A DNA stretch of 64,000 nucleotides from Octopus sinensis (Eukaryota): the NCBI RefSeq assembly GCF_006345805.1, contig NC_043023.1, positions 7,874,001 through 7,938,000 of the forward strand, read 5' to 3'. This document shows, one piece after another, positions 4,575 through 60,020 of the stretch (its first letter is position 1; the number at the start of each line of letters is the position of its first letter). Made by a program: the position numbers and the translations under genes. A model generated the notes under the pieces. It ran no database searches and was not told the origin of the DNA. It saw nothing but the letters and a program-made list of their open reading frames with translations.

Positions 4575-4668
4575 CCTTATCTTTCCTGATGAGAAGATTG
4601 CATAATGTACCTTTTATTCGTTCGGAATAAAAATATGCTGTCTTCGAAACATATGTCGAGAGTAAAGG
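4575..4668 (+). ncRNA. Type I hammerhead ribozyme motif with extended stem II
   Basis: Stem I CTTTC/GAGAG; CTGATGA 4586-92; stem II GAAGA...TCTTC (4593-4645); GAAA 4646-49; palindromic stem III ACATATGT; GUC triplet with predicted cleavage after 4657. Confidence 0.8.
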
Positions 4669-6309
4669 AATTTTGTTAACATCTTCGTTCGACTCCATTC
4701 TTTCATTTACTAATATACAACGCAGAAATTTCTACACAAGAAACCGGAGTTTCTACCCTTGACAAGTCGCTTCAACCGTGTTTTCTGACATGAATTTGCT
4801 ACCCAGGTATCGGTTAATCGAATTATCCATGCTGACGATAAACATAGGATAATTCATTCACCTACTTAAATATATATATATATAAGTACAAAGTAAGATA
4901 GGGGTTATGAGTGTAACCCACTATGGGATATCAGTTATCCAATATACTGCCAGTAAAGTACCCAGAAAGGCTAATACATAAATGCTAAGAATTGCAATGC
5001 AATTAATTCATTTATTGTATTATATGGGTGAAGGTAAAATGTTTTACCTCAAATTCATAATACAAAATAAGAAAATGGAGGAATAGATTTCTATCAATCA
5101 TCAACTACTAGATTATACCAATTCATATAATTTATTAACTAATTATTTAGATTAAATAGCTGTATTATTCTGTTGGATTTGGATGTTCCTATTTAATCTA
5201 AATAATTAGTTAATAAACTATATGAATTGGTATTATCTAGTAGTTGATGATTGAAAGAAATCTATTCCTTCATTTTCATATTTGGTATATATAATATATA
5301 TATATATATATGTGTGTGTGTGTGTGCATGTGTATGTATATTTATATATCCAGCTGTATATATGTACCTGCAACACCCACTGACTACTAGTGTTGCTTTG
5401 TTTACGTCCCCATAACTTCAAACTGATAGAATAAGCACTGGGGTTAGTTAGTCTAAGCTAAACCCTTAAAGGCAGTACCCCAGCTCAAAGACCAAAGCAG
5501 GTAAAAGATGAAAGATAACATTATTTCAGGTATGTTATAATCTACCTGTTTTATCAATCACCTGTTAACGAGACACCTGGAACATATAAACAAGTTTTCA
5601 GTATCATTGAAACAGCAATTAAACTAATTCCATTCCAAATGGAGTTATAATTTACCTGTGTTATTAATTACCTGTTAATAACACCTGGAAACAAGTTATT
5701 GGTAATATTTAATTAAAAACTTGACAATCACCTGTGCAGGTGTGCTATTAATTTACCTGTATAAGACATGTCAATGATATTGTTATTAATTTGATTGTTT
5801 TAAAGCTTAAGTTTATGGCATCGTGTCTCCGCACACCTATCACCATTACTAGATGGGATGTAATTAACTTTCCTGTATAAAAACACTAATTAAATACTGC
5901 TATACTCTCTTTTACTTGTTTCAGTCATTTGACTGCGGCCATGCTGGAGCACCGCCTTTAATCGAGCAACTCGACCCTGGGACTTATTCTTTTGTAAGCC
6001 CAGTACTTATTCTATCGCTCTCTTTTGCCGAACCGCATCGGTTGTCAAGCAATGCTAGGGGGACAAATACAGACACACAAACACATTACATGCATATATA
6101 TATACATATATACGATGGGCTTCTTTCAGTTTCCGTCTACCAAATCCACTCACAAGGCTTTGGTCGGCCTGAGGCTATAGTAGAAGACACTTGCCCAAGG
6201 TGCCACGCAGTGGGACTGAACCCGGAACCATGTGGTTGGTAAACAAGCTACTTACCACACAGCCACTCCTGCGCCTATATCATGTTTTAATTTTAATAAT
6301 TAGTGTGTT

Positions 6310-6600
6310 CACACCCCATGATATGTTATTTTGCTTTTATGGGTGTTTTTTACAAAGAGGGTTCCTGTGACAAAAGTATATAACCTTTGAATCTGTCTAA
6401 TATATTCTTGTGAAGTCATATTTATGCATTCAAGTGTATTTGGACATGAAAAGACCTTCCACTCTGAAAATAGTCTTGGGAGAAATTTCTCTTTCTCTAA
6501 ACATGTGTGAAAACACATTGATTTGTGAATGATGCCATTGGATCATAGAACAAATACATTTCTGCATCCTTTCACTTCATCAGCTATGAGCACCAAATCT
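6310..6600 (-). mobile_element. Heavily decayed Tc1-like transposase relic
   Basis: Frame-shifted SDEK..DP-NG..EKEKFLPRLFSEWKVFS..MTSQEYI loosely follows the Tc1 SDE..DGPDG..W..FS..MNS.EY order. Confidence 0.3.
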
Positions 6601-7419
6601 GTTATTCACAGCCCAAATAAAAATGAAATTATTCTTATTAAAACAACATATAATCCATTTGCTAATGTCCCTGAATAAGGCTAGGTCAAACTAGAATTAG
6701 TGATGCCCAAAGCAGCATTGAATAAAATATATGCTGGATTAATACAGATGACATTGCGATGTCATTTTAATTTTCTCCTAGTCCAAGTTCTCTTTCTTTA
6801 ATTAAATCTTTAATAAATAATTCTAAATTTTGACACAAAACTGGCAGTTTTGTATTTGACTGGTACTTTATTTTATCAGCATTTAAATCCAAAATTCTAC
6901 AACACTACATAATCAGCATTTAAATCTAAAATTCTACAACACTACATATAATTCTAAATCTGAAATTTTCTGCAACTGTAAGCACTTGGATAAATATCTT
7001 TGGACACCAACCTCTCTGGATTCAGCAGTTGTCTCACAGACTTTTGGACTCCTCACTGATGAATTAGTCTCCAGTTAGATTAATTATGATTTCTACAGTC
7101 AAAGGGGATATAACTCTTAATTTCTTTTTCTAATTTATTCACCCTTTGTTTTCTCATGCCATTTTTCTGCATCAACCTTCTGCTCATGGTTTTTCATGTA
7201 CCAGCATCTTGATTTTCAAATAGAGCCTAAAAATTACTTTAATTTTCTTTCTTTTCCCATTTTTATTCATCCTCTGTCTTCCACTTTTTCTGTCAACCTT
7301 CTTCTGGTTCAGAGCCTGGTGATTGCTTGGAGATACAAGGTACGTTATATAAATCTGCCTAACCTTAGTGTTACTTTGGCAAGGAACTACTAGCTCTTAT
7401 TTTAAGTAATGTGTATATT

Positions 7420-7925
7420 GTGGAGGCACGTGGCTTAGTGGTTAGGGTCTCAGCATCATGATCGTAAGATTGTGGTTTCGATTCCTGGACCGGGTGACAC
7501 GTTGTGTTGTTGAGCAAAACACTTCATTTCATGTTGCTCCAGTCCACTCAGCTGGAAAAAAGGAGTAACGCTGCGAAGGACTGGCGTCCCGTCCAGCTGG
7601 GGAACACATACGCCATAGAAACCGGGAAAGCGGGCCCATGAACCTGGCTAGGCTTTGAAAGGGCGCATTTGTGGAGGCAAAATGGCCCAGTGGTTAGGGT
7701 AGTGGACTCATGGTCGGAGAATCGCAGTTTCAATTCCCAGACCAGGCGTTGTGTGTGTTTATTGAGCAAAAACACCTAAAAGCTCCACGAGGCTCCGGCA
7801 AGGGGTAGCGGCAAACGCTGTTGTACTCTTTTGTCACAACTTTCTCACACTCTTTCTTCCAGTTTCTTGAGTAACGCTGCAATGTACTGGCTTCCCGTCC
7901 AGCTGAGGGGGAACACATACACCAC
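7420..7925 (+). mobile_element. Two adjacent tRNA-derived CORE-type SINEs of related families
   Basis: Heads at 7420 and 7671, both with A/B boxes and TTGAGCAAAACAC; shared 3' block GAGTAACGCTGC.A.G.ACTGGC.TCCCGTCCAGCTG..GGGAACACATAC. Confidence 0.75.
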
Positions 7926-59400: not shown

Positions 59401-59536
59401 TGGACGTTTTGTTTTGGTGTCTCGCTATGTCGTATACGCCTATGAGGATTTACCTTCCCAATGAAACTCGGTTTTTTCCCAAACTTTTCTCAACCTGCTA
59501 TAATGTAATACGTCCTTGGTGTGTGTGGTAATTGTA

Positions 59537-59628
59537 TGCGGCGAAGCTGAAGAGGCTATTGACCTACATGTATATCAATTATGCATTGATATAAATTGTT
59601 CAATAAAGCCAGAAACATATGTACCGCA
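59537..59628 (+). ncRNA. Degenerate hammerhead motif
   Basis: TGCGG/CCGCA stem I, CTGAAGA, GGCT...AGCC stem II with long inner hairpin, GAAA CATATG TA. Has a 5-nt insertion before the core and an extra A before GAAA. Confidence 0.55.
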
Positions 59629-59930
59629 AAATCCTTTGCATCCTGTTTTTCTTTATAATTATAATATATATATATATATAATTATATATATATATATATA
59701 TATAATATATATTATATATATTAATAATAATATAAGGGTAGCAAAAATTCTCTGCAACCAGCGGTCTAGTGAGAAAGAAAAGATAGTCAAAGACTATATA
59801 ATATACATTCAACAATAAAGGAATGGCCCTGATAGGCCATTCGACTCACTAGAAAGAGCAGCCAAACTCAAACCGCTAAACAGTTGTAATTCTGAAATTG
59901 AAAGAGAAATAAAAACATTTACCCTTTTCA

Positions 59931-60020
59931 TCTCTGGACTATGCATAGTTTCGACAAACTTTTGTAAACAAATTACTTATATTAAATTTATTTACAACTG
60001 GCATGTCTCGTCAGTAGAGA
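59931..60020 (-). ncRNA. Type I hammerhead ribozyme motif, near canonical
   Basis: Minus strand reads TCTCTA CTGACGA GAC-[49 nt with 13-bp hairpin]-GTC GAAA CTATGCATAG TC|CAGAGA. Perfect palindromic stem III and GUC triplet; one A.C mismatch at the base of stem I. Confidence 0.75.

Follow-up and report, generated by a model that had tools for sequence, protein, structure and literature searches.

Type I hammerhead motifs with a long helix II in putative Penelope-type insertions of Octopus sinensis

Counts of hammerhead ribozymes in animals, and claims that abundant clades of Penelope-like elements (PLEs) are free of them, depend on descriptors and covariance models with a short helix II. A stretch of Octopus sinensis DNA (NCBI RefSeq assembly GCF_006345805.1, contig NC_043023.1, positions 7,874,001 to 7,938,000 of the forward strand; 64,000 nucleotides, termed the window and numbered from its first letter) contains hammerhead-like motifs in which helix II is far longer. 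The locus therefore raises two questions: are these motifs hammerheads, and what kind of element carries them? An initial annotation, made from the sequence without database searches, had described a family with a palindromic stem III and an unusually long stem II. We find that the motifs are real, and consider it probable from the sequence comparisons that the window holds at least five short PLE-type insertions in (TA)n, mostly head-to-head, of which the sufficiently long copies carry a type I hammerhead with a long helix II.

Hammerhead motifs and their helices

The window was searched with a strict descriptor that set minimum lengths of 5 bp for stem I, 4 bp for the closing stem of helix II and 2 bp for helix III, and that allowed a helix II loop of up to 120 nt. 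Four sites matched, exactly those previously called intact, and a complete motif is present at each of the coordinates given for them. Shuffling in dinucleotide-preserving blocks (200 shuffles) produced 0.01 sites on average and at most 1; with 4 sites against 0.01 expected, the motif is not a chance product, and the type I hammerhead motifs are real and above chance. Tolerating one core mismatch yielded no extra site in the window. All four sites share the same architecture, in which a stem I strand is followed by CUGANGA, a closed helix II, GAAA, a self-complementary helix III, U-H and the second stem I strand. They are listed here with their parts and predicted cleavage sites (MFE, minimum free energy).

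4574..4669, + strand: hammerhead A (type I), descriptor match; the MFE fold gives stems I and II
A, 5' parts: stem I 5' strand 4574-4585; CUGAUGA 4586-4592; helix II 4593-4645 (53 nt); GAA 4646-4648
A, 3' parts: helix III ACAUAUGU 4649-4656; C17 4657; predicted cleavage 4657/4658; stem I 3' strand 4658-4669
49104..49210, + strand: hammerhead B, right arm; stem I 49104-49111 / 49203-49210, 8 bp; CUGAAGA 49112-49118
B right arm, remaining parts: helix II 49119-49186 (68 nt); GAA 49187-49189; helix III ACGGUGCAUCGU 49190-49201; A17 49202; predicted cleavage 49202/49203
48877..48983, - strand: hammerhead B, left arm; identical inverted copy of the right-arm motif; predicted cleavage 48885/48884
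59931..60020, - strand: hammerhead C; CUGACGA 60014-60008; helix II 60007-59953 (55 nt); GAA 59952-59950
C, remaining parts: helix III ACUAUGCAUAGU 59949-59938; C17 59937; predicted cleavage 59937/59936; stem I of 5 bp after an A.C mismatch

The type I core (C3 U4 G5 A6 N7 G8 A9, G12 A13 A14, A15.1-U16.1 and H17) is complete in A, in both arms of B and in C, and each has three helices, of which stem I is open-ended and helices II and III are closed. The cleavage sites derived here coincide with the three proposed earlier (4657/4658, 49202/49203 and 59937/59936), to which 48885/48884 is added. Stem I comprises 5+5 bp in A, 8 bp in B and 5 bp in C, where the mismatch occupies the first pair (1.1-2.1). 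The pair 10.1-11.1 that closes helix II is G-C in A and C, and A-U in B. Since 48877-48983 (-) and 49104-49210 (+) are the arms of a single palindrome, the independent intact sequences number three, not four, and fall into two sequence families. The earlier count of at least four well-formed hammerheads thus stands for sites but not for independent sequences, as the arms of B are identical.

Helix II folds on its own into a basal stem of 4-6 bp, an internal loop or bulge, and a distal stem of 13-19 bp, which together make an interrupted hairpin of 19-24 bp. The closing stems measure 6 bp (A), 5 bp (B) and 4 bp (C), and pairing starts directly after A9 in all three. The computed helix II energies lie far below those of shuffles (z of -3.3 for A, -5.4 for B at -24.4 kcal/mol, and -3.8 for C), and MFE folding of the whole motif recovers stems I and II. 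A stem II of 53-73 nt had been reported; a very long hairpin is present, at 53, 68 and 55 nt in the intact copies, while the 73 nt value comes only from a relic at 36075-35983 (-).

Helix III, self-complementary in all intact copies, consists of 2-4 bp and a 4 nt loop when folded as a hairpin. Copy A has 2 bp and a palindromic tetraloop, and the 12-nt helix III of B and C is still able to form a 4 bp stem with a UGCA loop, 4 bp being more than in the typical PLE minimal hammerhead. The predicted hairpin energies are 0 (A), -1.2 (B) and -0.3 (C) kcal/mol, against -8.4 (A), -19.5 (B) and -17.3 (C) kcal/mol for a self-duplex between two copies. In these models the proposal of a palindromic stem III that is too weak alone in every intact copy is borne out: as a hairpin helix III would be marginal, and it would be suited to dimerisation. 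Monomeric cleavage is published for invertebrate hammerheads whose helix III has 2 bp and a tetraloop (PMC7761336).

Copies B and C are homologues. BLAST gives 74-76% identity for their 3' parts, while the ribozyme region has diverged too far for BLAST to report; the core boxes of the two are still aligned by MAFFT. Sixteen stem positions can be compared between B and C: at 8 both sides have changed yet still pair, 1 shows a one-sided change, 5 show no change, and at 2 pairing is lost in C. Copy A, from an unrelated sequence family, is alike in architecture. The compensatory changes between B and C, together with copy A, are good evidence for selection on structure, as judged from one pair plus one outgroup. 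The covariation noted initially is thus retained in that the stems differ yet pair, with support limited to one homologous pair and an unrelated third copy. Alignment of A with the decayed copies F, G and E, listed below, revealed no sequence homology, so that pooling them for covariation is impossible. The four full motifs are misaligned by MAFFT. A covariance model of 57 positions, built without the distal helix II, is unable to bridge the 43-58 nt insertion; its matches were partial or of low complexity and were uninformative on the relics.

At the Rfam gathering score nothing is called in the window. With permissive thresholds on short stretches, copy A matched the Rfam model Hammerhead_1 (RF00163) end to end with 18 bits, compared to a gathering score of 34 (E 0.053 in 161 nt), and neither B nor C gave an Rfam hammerhead match at E<=10. 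The long-stem-II form therefore lies outside Rfam calls at gathering score, in keeping with the initial reading. Judged by the defining features in their sequences, A, B and C are hammerheads that existing models leave uncalled.

Four decayed copies had been proposed in addition. Three are plausible hammerhead relics, and the long spacer is present in two of them, F and G.

~4172-4245, + strand: relic in element E (proposed at 4181); read by eye, stem I AUUAUG/CAUAAU, GAAACGUGCGUC, box UUGAUAA
59534..59645, + strand: relic F (proposed at 59537); CUGAAGA, 58 nt helix II hairpin, GAAA, ACAUAUGU, A17
35976..36082, - strand: relic G (proposed at 35976); 7 bp stem I UUCUGUG/CACAGAA, CUGAUGA, 73 nt spacer, GAAA

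The relic in element E retains a 6 bp stem I, GAAA, helix III ACGUGCGU and the cleavage-site C, and its helix II has collapsed and does not close. Relic F is interrupted by a 5 nt insertion between the stem I strand and the box and has one additional A ahead of GAAA; it ends where (TA)n begins, some 45 nt downstream. Helices II and III of relic G no longer close. The fourth candidate, at 8654 (+), was rejected. Although a CUGAAGA box, GAAAC and a small hairpin are present there, neither stem I nor helix II pairs in any register.

Host elements and surrounding sequence

The intact motifs and the relic in element E lie within short elements, which are listed together with a further element, D, of the B/C family.

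48754..49421, both strands: element B, head-to-head pair of 5'-truncated copies; left copy (-) 49084 to 48754, right copy (+) 49085-49335
49336-49421: tail of element B, after the right copy, ending ...GCCACCC; (TA)n flanks B on both sides
59736..60166, - strand: element C, solo copy of the B family; tail ending ...GCUACCC at 59739-59736; (TA)n on both sides
3540..3876, both strands: element D, inverted pair of the B/C family; tail clear on the left (-) arm only, ~3540-3600
4438..4758, both strands: element A, of the other family; inverted 5'-truncated arm of 47 nt at 4438-4484; main (+) copy with the hammerhead 4485-4717 (233 nt)
to 4758: tentative tail of element A, ending ...UUUCUACCC
3982..4432, both strands: element E, inverted pair with 138 nt arms, 96% complementary; holds the hammerhead relic

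The hammerheads sit 55-220 nt upstream of the element 3' ends. B, D, A and E each consist of a 5'-truncated copy with an adjacent inverted 5'-truncated copy, and C is solo. The pairs agree in their outer 3' ends and vary in their inner breakpoints. In element B the two copies, of ~331 nt (-) and ~251 nt (+), are alike at their outer 3' ends and differ at their inner ends, and both copies of element D are cut off just 3' of the hammerhead, so that no ribozyme is left. Arrays of (TA)n flank B and C on either side and also surround D, E, A and F. A common end, ...UUGUUGA, is followed by a homologous extension of 65-85 nt after the right copy of B, after C and after the left copy of D, which ends in ...GCYACCC in B and C. 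The left copy of B is devoid of this extension; the tail is thus one-sided.

The arms of element B are 100% complementary over 179 nt. Across ~250 nt they are free of substitutions and differ by 4 single-base indels, most of which fall within short homopolymers. This identity points to a very recent insertion, gene conversion from arm to arm, or an error of long-read assembly.

The short inverted copies of A (4438-4484) and D (3600-3745) start 13-14 nt 3' of the cleavage site predicted for the hammerhead, and in element A this start falls just beyond the stem I 3' strand. Such start points would fit cDNA made on self-cleaved RNA, although with two cases they are possibly due to chance.

The window as a whole has an A+T content of 59% and contains (TA)n and (CA)n-type microsatellites, repeats resembling short interspersed elements (SINEs) and fragments of long interspersed elements (LINEs). 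Its sole clear host gene is an intact open reading frame (ORF) of 472 aa encoding a C2H2 zinc-finger protein at 20186-21604 (-), which is also recorded on chromosome CM016885.1 of assembly GCA_006345805.1 and is 98% identical over 72% of its length to Octopus bimaculoides XP_014787614.1 ('zinc finger protein 569-like') and 91% identical to a protein of a Logan assembly. LINE-type reverse transcriptase (RT) fragments are found at 52571-53134 (-), 60380-61000 (+), with a YADD motif at 60380, and ~1500-1700 (+), none of them PLE-like. Their relatives carry Pfam RVT_1, the nearest being ORFs of 70-82% identity on ENA contigs from organisms other than octopus. The ENA contigs with relatives of a LINE RT fragment or of the zinc-finger gene (loci L002-L005) hold no repeats in common with the window and no hammerhead. 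A protein search with a 91 aa ORF spanning element A returned zero relatives.

Dozens of copies of a SINE-like repeat occur on both strands, mostly beside (TA)n or (CA)n (e.g., 53554-54120, 30140-30634 and 27392-27874). Several inverted repeats are present as well. One at 47775-48025 resembles a miniature inverted-repeat transposable element (MITE), with terminal repeats AAAATCATTTGC.../...GCAAATGATTTT, no hammerhead and miRNA-model matches that are only subthreshold; telomere-type repeats lie in both of its arms, (CCCTAA)x4 at ~47825-47858 and TTAGGG copies at ~47958-47985. A near-perfect hairpin of 187 nt at 26962-27148, probably a MITE, gives the top subthreshold Rfam match (MIR7996, 91 vs 119 bits) and bears a CTGATGA box at each outer end, around neither of which a hammerhead fold closes. 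Large inverted repeats at 38023-39130 and 25459-26001 have arms of 125-390 nt with 85-92% identity, and no hammerhead core was found in them. A tandem repeat at 31883-32835 (-), with a unit of ~120-160 bp in which long ORFs stay open, repeats ...IYINGKMSVCVC...FIQIHNFSVRGLAL...

Origin of the elements and proposed mechanism

Variable 5' truncation, an adjacent inverted 5'-truncated copy and a one-sided tail are hallmarks of PLE insertion, and a preference for (TA)n targets is assigned to the Naiad and Neptune clades (Craig et al. 2021, PMC8557442). Because the octopus elements combine inverted pairs, variable 5' truncation, (TA)n and a one-sided tail, all listed PLE hallmarks, we favour a PLE-type origin. 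The tail of 65-85 nt is longer than the 30-40 bp cited for PLEs (PMC8557442). The (TA)n bias is found in Neptune-type PLEs too and does not single out Naiad. Short host elements, and the absence of an ORF for RT or a GIY-YIG endonuclease in the window, agree with what had been noted initially; the designation 'non-autonomous' does not follow, since 5'-truncated 3' ends of an autonomous PLE would account for the copies just as well as non-autonomous derivatives.

Several observations weigh against a PLE-type origin with working ribozymes. A scan of the 64 kb window for YxDD found only the LINE-like YADD at 60380, and none of the 73 window ORFs of at least 95 aa is a candidate for a PLE RT or GIY-YIG endonuclease, which leaves insertion anatomy as the sole basis of the PLE assignment. 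Head-to-tail tandem copies of the A-E elements are absent from the window, which makes intramolecular dimers unavailable at these loci. Intact independent motifs number only three, which confines the covariation evidence to these loci. The A-U pair at 10.1-11.1 in B and the mismatch at 1.1-2.1 in C may lower activity, and PLE hammerheads cleave poorly in vitro (PMC4209133).

If these were monomeric or dispersed copies of metazoan retrozymes without long terminal repeats (non-LTR retrozymes), spread via hammerhead-processed circular RNAs, they would not be truncated PLE 3' ends at all. Short (150-400 bp), AT-rich, non-coding units with a type I hammerhead are indeed the signature of retrozymes (PMC7229834), and the invertebrate retrozyme hammerheads include a helix III of 2 bp plus tetraloop as in copy A. 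The canonical retrozyme hammerheads, however, combine loop-loop contacts with a helix II of 4 bp, the window contains no head-to-tail repeats, and 5' truncation, inverted pairing and one-sided tails are traits of PLE integration. We regard a retrozyme origin as quite unlikely, with the reservation that the two readings overlap, as a 2026 preprint derives retrozymes from the pseudo-LTRs (pLTRs) of PLEs (10.64898/2026.07.22.740005). A further possibility is that the arms of B, D, E and A, which resemble terminal inverted repeats flanked by TA-rich DNA, belong to foldback or MITE-type DNA transposons targeting TA, with the hammerhead-like motif being incidental or inherited baggage; other MITE-like inverted repeats are found in the window. 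Such elements should carry fixed terminal inverted repeats and a target-site duplication on every copy; here arm lengths vary and the ends are asymmetric, and target-site duplications are unreadable within (TA)n. A DNA transposon with fixed terminal inverted repeats is a poor fit given that the inner arm junctions differ among copies while the outer ends are constant, that C is bounded by (TA)n on both sides yet is without a partner arm, and that the ends are asymmetric, with a one-sided tail. Compensatory changes that keep the ribozyme stems also argue against it, leaving this origin highly improbable.

The motifs might also be inactive, their core being kept through the youth of the copies, and the functional unit, if any, might be the long hairpin, for example as a small-RNA precursor or a protein-binding stem. 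The identical arms of B carry no independent information, a single non-ideal pair adjoins the core in B and likewise in C, three relics within a single window show that decay is common, and the long hairpins give subthreshold matches to miRNA models. Youth, on the other hand, does not suit B and C, which are ~25% diverged where they can be aligned and more so in the ribozyme, while every core nucleotide is kept and eight changes are compensatory; the unrelated family A, moreover, has the identical architecture. Inactivity of this kind appears very unlikely.

For the favoured PLE-type insertions we propose that the element RNA would self-cleave 3' of GUC or GUA. Hammerheads stack helix II coaxially on helix III, so a long, rigid helix II could compensate for a weak helix III. 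In a monomer, the long helix II would stiffen a scaffold whose helix III is marginal. In a dimer, two copies would pair via the palindromic helix III, within one transcript or in trans; pairing of this type has been proposed for PLE and newt hammerheads. The internal loops located 4-6 bp above the core might, speculatively, replace the usual contact between loop 2 and stem I. By cleavage, read-through or multimeric transcripts would be cut down to unit length, and a PLE RT/GIY-YIG protein from another locus of the genome would then reverse-transcribe the unit-length RNA.

A bolder version would place the elements in a (TA)n-targeting PLE clade such as Naiad, whose reported 'half-cores' would then be functional long-helix-II ribozymes. 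Hammerheads would be universal in PLEs with an endonuclease (EN+), and the class would have been missed by Rfam and RNAmotif descriptors across invertebrates. We consider this unlikely, though conceivable.

Comparison with known hammerhead systems

The pLTRs of canonical PLEs contain type I hammerheads whose helix III is palindromic (PMC4209133; PMC6765202). The minimal hammerheads of PLEs have a helix II larger than usual, at 6-8 bp, and an unpaired base after A9 is among their listed features (Cervera and de la Pena 2014, PMC4209133). The premise of the initial annotation that PLE hammerheads typically have a very short stem II is therefore contradicted by the literature. The octopus copies resemble the minimal hammerheads in being type I, in a weak, palindromic helix III capable of dimerisation, in a helix II longer than the canonical metazoan one and in the lack of an obvious loop-loop tertiary motif. 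They likewise lie near the 3' end of a PLE-style insertion and form many divergent families per genome. In contrast to the 6-8 bp of minimal hammerheads, helix II here is 53-68 nt long, with 19-24 bp and internal loops, and is missing the unpaired base after A9 that typifies them. With 2-4 bp and a 4 nt loop, helix III is present where it is absent or 1 bp in the minimal form, stem I reaches 8-10 bp, and no RT/GIY-YIG ORF accompanies the octopus copies in the window. Lunse, Weinberg and Breaker are said to have treated PLE minimal hammerheads as well, in 2017.

With the metazoan type I hammerheads of RF00163 (non-LTR retrozymes, Schistosoma Sm-alpha, newt satellite 2) the octopus motifs have in common the core, the topology and the GUC/GUA site, the helix III of 2 bp with a palindromic tetraloop (copy A), and hosts that are short, AT-rich, non-coding repeats. 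They differ in helix II, canonically of ~4 bp with a loop that contacts stem I, whereas the octopus hairpin loop is 20 or more bp away. They are also not tandem, and they score poorly or not at all (18 vs 34 bits for A, nothing for B and C).

A closer parallel in spacing comes from Craig et al. 2021 (PMC8557442), in which the spacers for core detection were 7-17 nt, with longer loops permitted by relaxed descriptors. In eight Naiad cases, half-cores separated by 35-50 nt were flagged as 'HHR_half_core' and not called ribozymes, and Naiads are described as being without canonical hammerhead ribozymes, with Naiad remnants present in Octopus spp. (PMC8557442). The octopus elements share with Naiad PLEs the (TA)n preference, the inverted 5'-truncated copies, the one-sided tail and the occurrence in Octopus spp. 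They share with the half-cores CUGANGA and GAAA in the 3' region at a spacing beyond the descriptors, 35-50 nt as reported and 53-68 nt here. Unlike the octopus motifs, the half-cores were not reported as folded hammerheads, and the comparison is one of description, not of sequence. On that descriptive basis the octopus motifs may be the folded version of the half-core observation. The suggestion of an undescribed structural subclass is accordingly possible but unproven, given that the eight wide-spaced Naiad cases are already on record (PMC8557442).

The octopus copies combine a perfect core and covarying stems with scores below, or features outside, the short-helix-II models. If the long-helix-II form is common, ribozyme censuses are undercounts, and the need of PLEs for a hammerhead could be re-examined. 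The long helix II would also provide a simple handle on how a hammerhead with a marginal helix III and without loop-loop contact might reach its active fold.

Very long insertions occur in other hammerheads, in which the peripheral helices vary. The discontinuous hammerhead in the 3' UTR of rodent Clec2 genes bears a very long helix insertion and is still a hammerhead. That insertion differs from the octopus case in that it lies in stem I, in a host mRNA and not in a transposon, and comprises hundreds of unstructured nucleotides, compared to a continuous hairpin here. Set beside these systems, the octopus hammerheads are a variant of a known system and not a new kind, representing expected variation of a well-known ribozyme in a well-known class of host.

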